A stretch of DNA of 64,000 nucleotides, taken from Malacoraja senta (Eukaryota). Under the pieces are notes generated by a model that saw only the letters and a program-made list of their open reading frames with translations, was not told the origin of the DNA and made no database searches. The DNA lies in contig CM075977.1 of the NCBI GenBank assembly GCA_038087875.1, positions 17,794,001 to 17,858,000 of the forward strand, read 5' to 3'. How positions within the stretch are numbered: position 1 is the stretch's first letter; each line of letters begins with the position of its first letter. This document shows positions 4,602 to 46,400 of this stretch, piece by piece. Position numbers and translations under genes: made by a program.

Positions 4602-5066
4602 CTAAACAAAAAGGAGACAGCAAGGAAAGAAAATAAAGAATGTGTATGGAATGACGTTGTATAAATTAAAGCACGCAAGTTATAAAATTAGTATCAAACT
4701 AAAATGACCAACAAGATAAGCATGGCAGAAATTTGTTTCACAGCAATGTCACCCATAATAGGCAAAATGTTCTTCTAAAAATATATTTTAGATATTTCTT
4801 ATTGAGCCAAAGTATAACTTTTATAAAGTTGTTCCTATGTCTTCAGATATCCTTTTGAAAAATACATTTATCCTGCCATGCTTGATAAAAAATATGAGAA
4901 TGCAAGGTCAGAAAATAAATTCTAGCAAATTGCAATAAAGAATTTAAAAAAAAACATATTTTGAAAGGAAAATAGAGAAGCACCAACAAAGATACACCAC
5001 ATGTAATACACAATGATATTCTATTCAGATGAACACACAAAAAGGAAACGATAAAAGTAGGCAGAC

Positions 5067-5108
5067 CTGAATTTCTCCGTTTGGGTGAATCCAACTCTTC
5101 TGTGATCA
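5067..5108 (-). CDS. RIMS2: RIMS2 alternative cassette exon, (M)ITEELDSPKRRNS(G); 33 nt (5067-5099, AG acceptor) or 42 nt (TG acceptor)
   Basis: tcttgctttttg|TG ATC ACA G|AA GAG TTG GAT TCA CCC AAA CGG AGA AAT TCA G|gtctgc. Phase 1-1. Resembles the recalled rodent RIM2 insert MITEDMDSTRKRNSG. Confidence 0.8.
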
Positions 5109-5957
5109 CAAAAAGCAAGACATAGACAATGAAGATGAGTGTGAGTGATGTTTTCAGATGATGAAACCAAAACTGATAGAAATGTACTTGATCAGTTTAA
5201 TGGTGAGTTTCATCTGACTGAAACTAGTATAGCTGTAACACGACAGACATAGTTCCATTTTGAAGGTAAAGGATTGCTTGACCCACAAGTAGGCAAATAA
5301 ACTCAGTTAATTAGGGACTTTCCATTGATGCTAAACATGCTAGCCAAATATTATCAAAATTAATGCTGTAATAGAGAAAGGAAATCACAATTCATTGACA
5401 ATATTCTCAGCAGATTTCTTATTGTTTTGATTCATGATATGACTCCCTACTTTCAAATATTTCATATTTGCTCCCTGTCTTAAACAAATGAAGCTTAAGA
5501 TTAATTTGGATCTAAAGTTCAGGCTTGAATTGGATGTTATTTACACTTTTAGTGATGGGAAGATGAAGAACAGATTCCAGATTGTACTGACATGCAATTA
5601 ACAACCATTAAATTAAGTATTCACCATGTTTTTATTAAAGACTAAAAGTAATGAAGAAATTTATGATGCTCTATTTTGCTTCAAGATTTTGAATGAGGTG
5701 TAGCTTTATCATTTCTAGCATACGTAATATAATTAAGATATTATAAATTGAAATAGCTTGTAAAGAATAAGCTAATCAATAATGGCCAACATTTTATTCT
5801 GAAAATCCAAGAGCTTTAATCTCTATTTCTCACTGCAAACTATATTCAACTGCCTACTGATTAAGTTGCTTATTATGCCCTACAATTATCATCTGGAAAT
5901 TAGTTGTGCAGATCTCTTAAAAATAACATATACAGTGACATTTAAGATTTAAAGACC

Positions 5958-9334: not shown

Positions 9335-10564
9335 CTAAACAGCATAAAAATGGTAAAGCCTCTTACTTTAAAGTACCTCCAGTTTATTTGTTAATTGAAA
9401 TGGTCTTTATTTTTTTGTCATGAATTTATGCTGATTTATGATGAAAGATATCAAAACATTAAATTTCTGATGTAGTTTCAGTATAAAGCAAGCCAGGTTT
9501 CACAGAGCACATTTATGAGTAGAGCAAATATAGTTTTCCTCCTTTCTGATAATCTGCCTCAATCCGTAGAGGAGACTCTCACACCATCTTTTTGAGATGG
9601 AAACTAATTCCGAGAACTGAAAGCTCTTCCCGAACCCACTGCTCGATCCACAAGTCTCAACATAAACTCCAACTAGAATCAAAGTTTTTCTCCAATAGCA
9701 TTGTCGTTGTAGATTTTGAGGTTATTAATACACTTGAATTTTTAATATATCCTGATAACTGAAGTTCCACTGCATTTAACGCACAAAAGGATTAACAGAT
9801 CTTTGGGGAATATTTGATTCTACGAACCACAGGACAAGTAAAAAAATAACACAAATGCATTCCTACCATGCTATGTTAAGTAAGCACACAATAAAAACAA
9901 TACATAAAAACACTTCTCAAACAAATGTGTTCATACTGCACAGAGTGTAAGTGTGTTTTTACTGAAAAGTTCTTAGAATATATAAATATTTTTATAAAAA
10001 TTATTTTATTAACTTTTGCAGTATTTTATCAAGTTACCGGTAAATACAACTGAAATAATGGATCTGCTTTACAATATTAATTTAAACAAGCATCAATTTT
10101 AATGTTGTCATTTCAAATAATAATGGAATATTGTCAAACTCATGATTGTGCAATTTCCCTTTTGATTACTATATAGAAAACTTAATTATATTTTATAATA
10201 TTATTTAAAAAAGTAATCCAAATTTACTAATCAATAGTTAAGTTGCCTCTTAAAATTTAGATTCATTTTCTACTTCATCATTCCTATCCTCTATCTATCC
10301 CTGCGTCATATCCCCATATATTTATAGCCTAAAAATTGTAAGCTGCAAAAAATAGCAATTTACAGACTGTAATACGTATGAGGCAATGCACATGATACAC
10401 TATGTGGGGAGAAGAACACATCATTCATACACCCATCAAAAGAAGCATGAAACCTAAAATTCACTGCTAATTATATAGCGTCTCATGCTTTCCATGGTTT
10501 TCACAGCCTGACAAACCTGGCTCAGAAAGCTGCCTCTGCTTTGACCTGTTATCAGCTACTGTAC

Positions 10565-10600
10565 CATTCATTTTCCTTTGCTGGTCTTCCCAGGTTACTT
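10565..10600 (-). CDS. RIMS2: Candidate RIMS2 microexon, 36 nt, (E)VTWEDQQRKMN(G)
   Basis: tgtttgctatgtttctatttgatttataatag|AA GTA ACC TGG GAA GAC CAG CAA AGG AAA ATG AAT G|gtacag. Phase 1-1 with an upstream TGC. Confidence 0.55.
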
Positions 10601-22243: not shown

Positions 22244-22477
22244 TGTGGCGGGGACTAGAAGGAGTCCAGCCAAAAAGTAATCGGACACGAGATGCGTGCA
22301 CTAGACTTGTTTATTCTCTCCAATACAGCTCCCTACTCCTCCAAGGTAACGGGAATTGCCCGGCCTTAAATACCCACTCAGGTACCGACCCAGTGACTAG
22401 TGCTTCCCACACCAAGATGCCTCCCTCCAGAGCCAATGGTTCGTTGTGCCCTTGGGTTGCCATCAGGTGCCGCCACA
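22244..22477 (-). repeat. 3' LTR of the Gypsy element
   Basis: Direct repeat of 24475-24702, adjacent to the PPT. Confidence 0.9.
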
Positions 22478-24474
22478 TGACCCCACCCCCAGAACCAGAG
22501 GCAACGAAGCGGACGGGATGCCGAACAAGGCAGCCCGAACTTGTAGATACAATCCCACACCCCGGGGGCTTGCTCGGTTCGGAAGAATCTCCGGGAGCTA
22601 GGGACGGCGGACGCCTGTGACGGGGCGGCTGAGCCACATGGACTGGCTCACTCAGGTCCAAGTGGGCCGGTTTCAAACGAGCCACAGACACAGTTTCACG
22701 CTGGCCTCCCATGTCCAAATCAAATGTAGTAGGCCCGTGCCGCAGCACGCGAAAGGGATCTTCATACGGGTGCTGCAAGGGTGACCTGTGGGAGTCACAG
22801 TTCAGACGTGAACTGGGTACCCCGGTCGGACGTGATGTGAAGTGGAACCCCAAAGCGGGCAATCCAAGTTGCCATGAGTGCACGAGCGCACGACTGAGTT
22901 GAAGTGTCCGTGAGCGGGAAGGCCTCCGGCCACCGCCTAAAATGGTCAACCACTGTAAGCAGGTGTGAAACACCCTGGGATGGAGGCAGTGGCCCCACGA
23001 TGTCCACGTGAACGTGATCGAACCGCTGGCGTGGCATTGCGGAGTCTTGAACTGGTGCCCGGACGTGTCGATGCATCTTTGATGTTTGGCACGGGATGCA
23101 CGCCCGGGCCCAGCGAGCGACCAGCTTACGAATTCCGTGCCACATAAACCTTGTGGCCACCATAGCGACCGTGGCCCGGTTGGATGGGTGGGCCAGCCCA
23201 TGGATCATCACAAAGACGCGACGGCGCCAGGCCGCCAGAACGATAGGCCTCGGCTGACCCGTGGATACGTCACAGAGGATGGAACCCGAGGGACCGAACG
23301 GCACGTCCTCAAGCACCAAGCCAGAGATCGCGGTGCGGTATGCCGGCATCTCATTATCCGCCAGCTGGGCCACCGCCAAAGCGGAGTAATCTATTCCCGA
23401 GGCCGCGTTAAGCATGGCTGCAATTGCCGGACGGGACAAAGTATCCGCCACGAGGTTGCATTTCCCGGCGATGTGTCGGACGTCCGTTGTATACTCCGAA
23501 ATGGCCGCCAGCTGGCGCTGCTGACGGGCGGATCAAGGATCCGAAACCTTTGCAAAGCAAACGTGAGGGGCTTGTGGTCGTGAAGGAACGGCCCTCGAGG
23601 AAGTACCGGAAGTGCCGCACTGCGATGTGTAAGGCGAGCAACTCCCGGTCGAAAGCGCTGTAGTGCTGGAGCAGCACTCAGGTGACAGCTAAAGAAGGCG
23701 AGAGGCCGCCAATGGCCGTTAACCGACTGTTCCAAAACGACGCCAACCGCAGAGTCCGAGGCATCCATGGTAAGGGCTGTGGGGGCGTCAGCCGACTGAT
23801 GCACGAGCATAGTCGCCCGAGCCAAGGCCTCCTTCGCCCCTTCAAACGCCGCCGTGGTGACAGCGTTCCACTGTCCAGTGGTTCCAGGTATTCCAGTGCG
23901 CCACCTGCTGCTGGTCGGAAAGCCACTGCTCATCAGCACGGGCCGATAGCCGGATCGGATCCTCGAAGCTCTCCCCCGAGAGCTGCTGGCGGATGTCTCG
24001 TGGCAACTGCTGCAGGTAGGTAAATTCAAAGAGCGGGCAGGGCTGGTGGTCGATCCTGAGAGTGAGCATCTCGCTCATGAGGGACGTGGGCATCTGGTCC
24101 CCGAGCCCGCCCATGTTAAGGACCCGACAGGCGCGCTGCATACGGCTCAGCCAGTAGATCCGGAGCAGCAGCTCTTAGAGGCCTGCAGACTTACCCGCCG
24201 CTGGCAGGTTATCGAGGTAAGGAATGACCCGACCGGCCGTCTGCTGGTGAAGGGCGCTTACCACATAGTGGTAACGAGTCTCGTCAGCCGTGACGTCGTG
24301 GATGAAGAACTGGGACTCGGCCTGTCGAAACCAAACCCCCGGCAGCGAGGTCCAGAATGTAGGCAGCTTCAGGGAGACCGCGTGGTGTTCGGCCTCGTAG
24401 GCGGCAGCGGCAGAATGCATTTTTTTTTCAAATTTCCCTTCCAGGATTACACTCCTGGGCGTCGGGGTCACCAG

Positions 24475-35049: not shown

Positions 35050-36000
35050 ATAATAATAATAATAATAATAATATATCTTTATTGTCATTGTACAAGAACA
35101 ACGAAATTAAGATTGCAACCTCAGTATCAATGCTATAAAATAAATAAATACGTACAAATAGGTCCATGTACACTGAAGGGTCTGTCCCACTTGGGTGTCA
35201 TTTGCGTGTCATTTACGCTACATCATTTACGCGTCACGATGGTGAGGCGTGGTGGCGTAGGCAGCGACCAGTGGTCGCGCGCGGCGCCCCAGGATTTTGG
35301 GATTCACAAAATCTTTGCGCGCCACCTGCGTGACGTGCAAATGACGCGCAAGTGGGACAGGCCCTTTAGGTTAATAATTAACGCTGCTGTCACTGTGTTG
35401 AGATAAGTCAGTTGTGCCAGTTGATTATGGGGCAAAGACAGATTATGGGGAACACTTAGCAGACTGATTCAGTGCATTTATAGCTCTACGGAAAAAGCTA
35501 TTTCTCAGTGGAGGTATGGGCGTAAAAGGCCTTATAACGTCTGACTGATGGAAGAAGTTGAAACAGACGGTGGCATGGGTGTTTGGAGTCCTTACAGATG
35601 CTGATGGCTTTTCTATGGCAGCATGCGTTGTAGGTGTCTTCCAGGGCTGGGAGCTGTATCCCAATGATCTTCTGTGCTCTGGAGACAACCCGCTGGAGAG
35701 CTCTCTTATCCGCAGCTGTGCAACTAAGATACCACACAGAGATGCAGTATGTTAGGATGCTCTCTGTGGTGCAGCGGTAGAAAGTCACCAGCATCTGTTG
35801 CGGCAGACCAGCTTTTTTCAGCATCCTCGGGGAAAACAATGGTGCTTTCTTGACCAGTACAGTGGTGTTACTGGACCATGTGAGGTCCTCTGAAATGTGT
35901 GAGCCCAGAAACCTGAAGCTGGACACTCTCTCCACTCTGTCCCCGTTGATGAAGACTGGCGCATACTCATCATCCTGTGACTTTCTAAGAACTGACATCC
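35050..36000 (-). mobile_element. Rex1/Babar-type LINE 3' part (RT C-terminus) with (ATT)n tail
   Basis: VERVSSFRFLGSHISEDLTWSSNT..FYRCTTESILTYCISVWY..HPCHRLFQLLPS. Confidence 0.85.
35177..35365. mobile_element. PIF/Harbinger-type MITE nested in the Rex/Babar 3'UTR
   Basis: TIR AGGG(T/C)CTGTCCCACTTG, flanked by TGA/TTA. Confidence 0.8.
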
Positions 36001-36425
36001 TTTATTTTAATTGCCATGCCACATTATTTCTTTCTGGTGACAATAATTAAATCTGGGGATCTCCAAGCTTAGTTATTATATTAACTCCTTGAAAAGTCCT
36101 TTGATTTTTGACTTATCACATTGTCATAAAATAATGATTTATCATAAAATAAAATAATTCTTTCTGTCAACACATCAAACCAAAGAACTCCGGGTTTTGA
36201 TGAATAAAATTACACAATTTTTAAAAGCCAGATAAAAAGTTTATATAAACAATAGATACGCACACTGACAGAACAAAAACTAAAAGAGGAAGGCATGAGA
36301 AAAAAACTGGATCAAATAGTTAACATCAGGTCGCAGAGACATACATATAAATAATGCTGCAAAGCTGGGATCTATTCAACTAACATCTACATTTTAATCA
36401 CCCAAAAGCATTCAATGGAACTTGC

Positions 36426-36470
36426 CTTTCCTCCCGTTAACAGGTGTAAATTGAGCTTTCTCCTCAGCGT
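36426..36470 (-). CDS. RIMS2: Candidate RIMS2 microexon, 45 nt, (D)AEEKAQFTPVNGRK(G), GC donor
   Basis: gtgcttgtgttttttaatcttataaag|AC GCT GAG...AGG AAA G|gcaagt. The donor equals the GC-AG consensus AAG|GCAAGT. Phase 1-1. Confidence 0.6.
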
Positions 36471-42742: not shown

Positions 42743-42775
42743 CTTCATAAAGATCAATTCCTTCTTCTCCATTGT
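42743..42775 (-). CDS. RIMS2: Candidate RIMS2 microexon, 33 nt, (N)NGEEGIDLYE(G)
   Basis: Long pyrimidine tract ...cttttccctgttacttccttcccag|AC AAT GGA GAA GAA GGA ATT GAT CTT TAT GAA G|gtttgt. Phase 1-1, purine-rich, about 800 nt downstream of the GTLER exon. Confidence 0.65.
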
Positions 42776-43566: not shown

Positions 43567-43676
43567 TTCTTTCCAGAGTCCCTTTTGGTGGAAGCTGTGG
43601 CAGCTGTCGACCCCTCCGTCCTATCATCGGTGTACTGGTTGGACTGGTTTGCACTGATCCACTACGGGGATGTGAT
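43567..43676 (-). CDS. RIMS2: RIMS2 coding exon, 110 nt, phase 2-1, containing the RQLPQLP RIM-BP SH3-binding motif
   Basis: tacgcag|A TCA CAT...GAA AGA A|gtgagt. Translates SHPRSGSVQTSPTSTPMIGRRGRQLPQLPPKGTLER versus RIM2 SHPRTGSVQTSPSSTPVAGRRGRQLPQLPPKGTLDR. Splices in frame to 46221-46400. Confidence 0.97.
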
Positions 43677-46220: not shown

Positions 46221-46400
46221 CTCGTTAGTGCAGGTGAAGGAGGGGCAGATCTTCCCGATGTTAATGATGGCATCGATCTCATGACGTTTGTTTCGGCACG
46301 TTCAGAGGATCTGGAGCGGGAGTTCATCCGCTCAAGCACAGGCTGTTGCTCTGTTGATCTGGATCTTTGATATTCCTGTCTATCGGATGGCTCGCGATTC
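46221..46400 (-). CDS. RIMS2: RIMS2 coding exon, 180 nt, phase 2-2 (splice site B region)
   Basis: ttacag|G AAT CGC...CTA ACG AG|gtgaaa. Translates (R)NREPSDRQEYQRSRSTEQQPVLERMNSRSRSSERAETNVMRSMPSLTSGRSAPPSPALT(R), matching mammalian RIM2 RDCEAADRQPYHRSRSTEQRPLLERTTTRSRSTERPDTNLMRSMPSLMTGRSAPPSPALSR as recalled. Not in the ORF track in this frame. Confidence 0.96.

Follow-up and report, generated by a model that had tools for sequence, protein, structure and literature searches.

A TG dinucleotide nine nucleotides upstream of a RIMS2 cassette exon is conserved across jawed vertebrates and may serve as a non-canonical acceptor

Can an intron of a presynaptic gene keep a TG in the place of the usual AG as an alternative 3' splice site, and keep it over very long evolutionary times? 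To our knowledge, TG acceptors depart from an almost universal AG rule, and the documented cases number only a few dozen. The question is raised here by the minus strand of a 64,000-nucleotide stretch of Malacoraja senta DNA, the whole of which we refer to as the window. A sequence-only reading had proposed that a 33-nt exon is preceded by nine in-frame nucleotides and these in turn by TG, and the minus strand bears this layout out: tttttg/TGATCACAG/AAGAG...TTCAG/gtctgc, where slashes mark candidate junctions, or, at greater length, ...gtcttgctttttg/TGATCACAG/AAGAGTTGG...AAATTCAG/gtctgcc, with the upstream flank also read as ...attgtctatgtcttgctttttg. The cassette exon (5067..5099, minus strand, as are all features below) has phase 1-1 and encodes (K/E)-ELDSPKRRNS-(G), a peptide with orthologues in more than 100 RIMS2 models, and it is followed by a GT donor (5065..5066) in the conserved context CTCAG/GTCTG. 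Directly upstream, the 9-mer TGATCACAG (5100..5108) contains the canonical CAG acceptor as its last three bases (AG at 5101-5100) and would, as a putative exon extension, contribute (M/V)-I-T and the first base of a Glu codon. The candidate non-canonical 3' splice site is the TG at 5109..5110 (context tttTTG/TG), which is invariant in the shark window, two birds and two teleosts.

By protein similarity the host gene is RIMS2. A full-library search with the exon at 46221..46400 (NREPSDRQ...MRSMPSLTSGRSAPPSPALT, recognized from minus-strand open stretches and protein searches) returned RIMS family proteins, word-indexed searches returned regulating synaptic membrane exocytosis protein 2, and the exon peptides of the window differ from the protein of the horn shark Heterodontus francisci at about 5 of 96 residues, which places the animal in or near the elasmobranchs. 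The 33-nt exon falls in a variable linker, right after a PxxP motif (RQLPQLPPKGTLER) within the proline-rich stretch RQLPQLP. This motif closes the upstream exon SHPRSGSVQ...RQLPQLPPKGTLER (43567..43676), which ends in GTLER, leaves phase 1 with a final base A and has the donor AGAA/gtgagt. The proposed (M)IT(E) frame of the nine nucleotides is thereby confirmed: A joined to TG ATC ACA GAA GAG gives M-I-T-E-E, and A joined to AA GAG gives K-E. Moreover, the 9-mer is in frame and stop-free, and we calculate from the codon table that an accidental xTG-Ile-Thr would arise about twice in 10,000 cases.

Three further alternative exons could be joined to the same acceptor, each of them in phase 1 with a final base G. 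The first, an 84-nt exon encoding (K/E)VTWEDQQRKMNGT...LSEP (the VTWEDQQ exon, 10517..10600, donor CCAG/gtttgt), has orthologues in mammal, bird and frog models, and its junction with the microexon would read SEP-E-ELDS at the CAG or SEP-V-ITE if the TG were used. The second is a 33-nt exon encoding NNGEEGIDLYE (42743..42775, donor GAAG/gtttgt), whose counterpart in Narcine and Chiloscyllium models is NNGEEGI(G/E)LYE. The third is a 45-nt exon encoding NAEEKAQFTPVNGRK (36426..36470) with a GC donor at 36425-36424 (AAAG/gcaagt). A bamboo shark RIMS2-type model (P0127) has a counterpart of it, ...EDAVQKTHFTPDNGRK-E-ELESPKRRNS..., and the exon looks genuine for elasmobranchs and capable of direct splicing to the microexon studied here. 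Across these partners, the CAG yields K-ELDSPKRRNS when GTLER precedes it or E-ELDS with the remaining partners, and the TG would yield M-I-T-E-ELDS or V-I-T-E-ELDS, respectively. The upstream donors are GT (one GC), as in U2-type introns, and AT-AC or U12-type consensus sequences are absent from them. A search of sequencing runs for the region returned RNA runs from relatives but none from the animal itself, together with further runs that are probably DNA; the RNA runs of relatives contain the neighbouring exon. Elsewhere in the RIMS2 introns, two long open frames (22314-24074 and 35501-36001) carry integrase- or reverse-transcriptase-like text, with a GC content of at most 0.56 at 22-24 kb, and look like retroelement remnants.

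Around the acceptor itself, the sequence is organized in a way that would suit a tandem site. A polypyrimidine tract (5111..5130; 15 of 20 positions are pyrimidines) abuts the TG and holds the conserved block TGTCTATGTCT. Upstream of it lies CTCAC (5141..5145), invariant in five genomes and a plausible branch site from its sequence, with its A at 5142 placed 33 nt upstream of the TG junction and 42 nt upstream of the CAG one. The zone from 5102 to 5172 is free of AG, the previous AG being at 5174-5173, so that none occurs within 73 nt of the CAG junction. The CAG was previously described as the sole AG of this acceptor, which is not the case: a second AG at 5098-5097, 3 nt downstream, makes CAG/AAG a NAGNAG pair (second acceptor AAG, 5097..5099; motif caCAG/AAG/AG, 5096-5102), and its use would drop one Glu to give K-LDSPKRRNS. 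The window contains the 15-mer TGTGATCACAGAAGA a single time, against an expectation of 0 from 100 shuffles. As a separate observation, eight bases at the TG and the beginning of the 9-mer, GTGATCAC (5102-5109), form a perfect palindrome in the shark and in birds, a symmetry that is broken in teleosts (GTGATCCC). We also considered an RNA helix, UCACA-UGUGA, at the TG. RNAalifold gave it 5 bp in the shark, the sole compensatory pair was contradicted by the second teleost, and we rejected it; the predicted fold of the shark acceptor region is not more stable than those of shuffled sequences (z = +1.38).

We compared the locus in five genomes, namely the shark window, the bird Tinamus guttatus, a second bird, the teleost Lates japonicus and a second teleost; the set is made up without mammal, gecko, horn shark, Acanthisitta, Cariama, Merops or Hipposideros (bat) DNA. 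The second bird and second teleost sequences come from host-derived metagenome contigs found by pattern scan. In the metagenome scan for the conserved core, 3 of 35 matches were truly host-derived, and scans with conserved-core patterns gave no match in bacterial genome contigs and none in viral contigs. The three contigs concerned (L013, L025 and L030) are vertebrate host DNA, two from a bird and one from a percomorph-like teleost, with RIMS2 intron and exon sequence. The acceptor reads cacggtg/TGATCACAG/AAG/AAGCGG...CTCAG/gtctgtcc in T. guttatus and gtgatg/TGATCCCAG/AAGACACGG...CTCAG/gtctgtcc in L. japonicus. Position -9 is occupied by TG, and never by AG, in all five genomes, and the bird and teleost orthologues therefore do not refute the proposal. 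The TG-to-CAG spacing is exactly 9 throughout, despite a 6-nt indel just upstream. The 9-mer is identical to that of the shark at 9 of 9 positions in birds and 8 of 9 in teleosts, compared with 22-24 of 33 for the exon itself; between shark and birds it shows zero synonymous changes, and the teleost difference turns Thr into Pro. The base that precedes the TG varies, being T in the shark (TTG), G in birds (GTG) and A in teleosts (ATG). Upstream, no AG occurs for at least 73 nt in shark and birds or in the 150 nt examined in teleosts, and about 60 nt of the intron are conserved in blocks, including CTCAC and TGTCTATGTCT, the distance from CTCAC to the TG being 33 nt in the shark, 39 nt in birds and 45 nt in teleosts. 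The layout is thus common to a chondrichthyan, actinopterygians and sauropsids and is conserved across jawed vertebrates.

These comparisons dispose of two other accounts of the locus. One holds that the TG is an artefact of assembly or sequencing, or that an ancestral AG has mutated in this lineage, and we consider it extremely improbable: five independently sequenced genomes, drawn from three vertebrate classes, all have TG there, and the orthologues effectively rule out both an error and a lost AG. Two sequencing runs from the same organism, in addition, contain 85% of sampled 31-mers in the surrounding 3 kb, a figure that speaks for the region and not for the base. The other account derives the rat-type MIT from a distinct 9-nt microexon at some other place in the intron and treats the match beside the 33-nt exon as coincidental. 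The MIT codons, however, run without a gap into the exon, and the exact codons lie directly upstream of it in every genome examined. Moreover, the viper and teleost variants follow the local sequence and the 15-mer core is present once in the 64-kb window, so that a separate MIT microexon is ruled out on the comparative data and has next to no probability in our estimate. Two further fish sequences are recorded here for completeness. In Aldrovandia affinis, a deep-sea eel (locus L003, 9.2-34.4 kb), we found no microexon or conserved acceptor core between the GTLER and MDVEERT exons, and this locus may represent a paralogue or a lineage in which the exon was lost. A Scleropages locus has one near-match to the microexon, the orthology of which is not clear.

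We then turn to the isoforms that gene models assign to this acceptor, for which the linker was read in 272 fetched proteins. The AG form is annotated widely, in more than 100 RIMS2 models including that of the bamboo shark Chiloscyllium (...GRK-E-ELESPKRRNS); other examples are GTLER-K-EAESSRRRNS in birds and turtles, K-EVDSTRRRYA in mammals, and SEP-E-EVDS after the VTWEDQQ exon. The three extra residues, as MIT or MVT, follow straight after GTLER in 10 models from 9 species. They occur in rat RIMS2 X30 and X48 (XP_063118966.1; GTLER-MITEDMDSTRKRNSG-AMDIEERN), so that the rat RIM2 insert peptide quoted in the sequence-only reading is real. They occur also in H. francisci X1 (XP_067888409.1; MITEELESPRRRNSG), in the pit viper Protobothrops mucrosquamatus (MVTE...), in the geckos Gekko japonicus and Eublepharis macularius, and in older, partial models of four birds. 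The earlier suggestion of an ancient TG/AG tandem that toggles three residues is therefore supported in part: the layout is shared by the three vertebrate groups named above, and gene models, those of sharks included, come both with the three residues and lacking them. All M(I/V)T models have one architecture, in which GTLER is joined directly to the microexon, and no V-ITE follows any other upstream exon among the 272 proteins. Modern bird and mammal annotations mostly have AG forms alone. When 135 aa of the horn shark protein were used to look for short RNA-derived open reading frames, all matches were genomic frames that run from the GTLER exon into the intron. In the blue tit (Cyanistes), isoforms with K-E-AESS and K-AESS are separated by exactly the 3-nt NAGNAG step. 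A model from the tortoise Gopherus agassizii (P0065, UniRef) reads GTLER-MESSRRRNSG, which implies a third AG acceptor inside the exon (GAAGAAG/TGGAAAGC-type); this form is probably a prediction forced by Met alignment and not a real isoform.

The alternative that has to be weighed most seriously assigns no splicing role to the TG at all. On this account, which we regard as doubtful and yet a real contender, only AG acceptors (the CAG and perhaps the AAG) are used, the 9-mer and about 60 nt upstream form a regulatory or spacing element of a tissue-regulated exon, and the M(I/V)T models were propagated from a single rat cDNA. Elements of the YCAY or UCAC type, or pyrimidine-rich protein binding sites between the tract and the AG, would be examples. 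The block conservation (CTCAC, TGTCTATGTCT) extends deep into the intron, the 9-mer is better conserved than the exon and lacks synonymous drift, and because the intron flank is conserved as well, a nucleotide-level regulatory constraint alone could explain what we see. The teleost change, moreover, is non-synonymous (Thr to Pro), and at -3 birds have G, an unfavourable base, and teleosts A. The M(I/V)T models are confined to the rat-like architecture with GTLER joined to the microexon, as one would expect if they followed from homology to a single rat cDNA, and are missing from most annotations rich in RNA-seq; protein homology to such a cDNA may indeed be part of their basis. Annotation pipelines, however, seldom accept non-canonical junctions from short reads, and for this reason the absence of TG-form models is weak evidence. 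Against a pure spacer, the 9-mer is in frame and stop-free and keeps its length of 9 while indels adjoin it upstream, and it encodes the very MIT of the rat isoform, a match that chance would produce about twice in 10,000 cases by the codon table. In addition, the viper model reads MVT and hence must have been read from the viper's own genome and not copied.

We believe that the RIMS2 site is, somewhat more probably than not, a new and very old member of a known rare class of acceptors, in which the TG is used in the shark lineage, a view that we take from the sequence and the gene models. On this reading, the CAG (position 0) would define the RIMS2 intron together with the pyrimidine tract and the conserved CTCAC, the AAG 3 nt downstream of it would complete a NAGNAG pair, and the UG 9 nt upstream would lie flush with the pyrimidine tract. 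If the second splicing step in the skate ligated at the UG, a 42-nt exon would result, and the protein would gain Ile-Thr together with Met where the GTLER exon precedes, or with Val where one of the other alternative exons does; the intron so removed would be of the GT-TG kind and would belong to the TG-AG tandem class. Since the AG form has been annotated in numerous species, the TG would be an alternative site, as this class requires. More tentatively, and with a confidence that falls a little short of even, we propose that the UG acceptor was kept through all of jawed-vertebrate history (shark, teleost, reptile, bird and rodent) as part of a triple tandem (UG at -9, CAG at 0, AAG at +3), with an RRxS motif a few residues past a RIM-BP-binding motif and a choice at the level of single codons that might tune a presynaptic scaffold.

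What such a choice could do for the protein may be gleaned from the exon itself, which carries a conserved basic R-R-x-S motif (KRRNS, RRRNS, RKRNS). From its sequence this motif may represent a basophilic-kinase-type consensus. It sits about ten residues past the proline-rich motif, and a figure legend labels the proline-rich motif of RIMS2 as SH3-binding (PMC7273530). Three extra residues at the N-terminal edge of the exon could alter the spacing or the recognition of these elements. If our reading is correct, the site would be among the oldest documented TG acceptors, and its conservation from shark to rodent in a core active-zone gene would mean that TG sites can be under selection for more than 400 million years. 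The isoform concerned would then be one that standard RNA-seq aligners and gene predictors discard, and most RIMS2 annotations would lack a real variant. This would amount to a new and unusually old case of a known rare class, with no new mechanism. The practical consequence, correct RIMS2 isoform catalogues, is modest; RIMS2 is linked to cone-rod synaptic disease and to autism. Moreover, the site would offer a clean natural substrate for studies of 3' splice-site choice at the second step.

Finally, the RIMS2 acceptor can be set beside splice-site classes that are already described. We found no literature on a GT-TG intron in RIMS2; a full-text literature search for the peptides MITEDMDSTR, MITEDVDSTR and MITEEVDS gave no match, and a search on RIM2 'splice site C' gave nothing relevant. 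Like NAGNAG acceptors, the exon starts with CAG/AAG, and a single codon sets the modelled bird isoforms apart (K-E-A versus K-A), but two canonical AGs 3 nt apart account for the gain or loss of Glu and not for the MIT extension. Similar to GNAS intron 3 (CTG,CAG/), where the ratios are tissue-dependent, a TG would act as an alternative acceptor beside an AG; the two GNAS sites, however, are 3 nt apart and documented by hundreds of ESTs, whereas those of RIMS2 are 9 nt apart and known from sequence and models. The exon also resembles SRRM4/nSR100-dependent neuronal microexons in being a small, frame-preserving and deeply conserved cassette in a presynaptic gene, with a conserved upstream flank, and RIMS2 is named among genes with neuronal microexons in two papers (PMC4387716; PMC7273530). 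In contrast to that group, for which the usual limit is 27 nt (broadly 51 nt), the RIMS2 exon has 33 or 42 nt, and the UGC near the acceptor in the shark tract (cttGCt) is missing in birds and teleosts.

The closest likeness is to the TG-AG tandem class. TG acceptors have been verified in 36 human genes; each is an alternative to an AG no more than 28 nt away, and every TG that precedes its AG is a YTG (Szafranski et al., 2007; PMC2374985). In six of them, RYK (intron 7), DLG4, SMARCA4, FBXL10, HNRPR and RRAD, the TG lies exactly 9 nt upstream of the AG and the TG form makes up 6-77% of ESTs, and the flanks of TG-AG sites are unusually conserved (PMC2374985). In the mechanism proposed, the intron is defined at an early stage through the AG, and the TG can then be selected at exon ligation (PMC2374985). 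Like the 9-nt members of this class, the RIMS2 site has GT upstream donors (one GC) of U2-type introns, a YTG 9 nt, and thus fewer than 28 nt, before the AG in the shark (TTG,TGATCACAG/), a pyrimidine tract that in the shark ends at the TG, and an in-frame difference of three codons; it too has an AG form, at the level of annotation in more than 100 models, and both site and flank are strongly conserved across vertebrates. It differs in that RIMS2 is outside the list of 36 human genes and its TG is known here from sequence and gene models alone, and in the addition of a NAGNAG pair on a small cassette exon. The -3 base is a pyrimidine in the shark (TTG) but not in birds (GTG) or teleosts (ATG), YTG being a regularity of the human set and not part of the definition. 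The last difference is one of age: orthologous use in the human study was followed only to frog and fish (PMC2374985), whereas the RIMS2 layout is conserved to cartilaginous fish.
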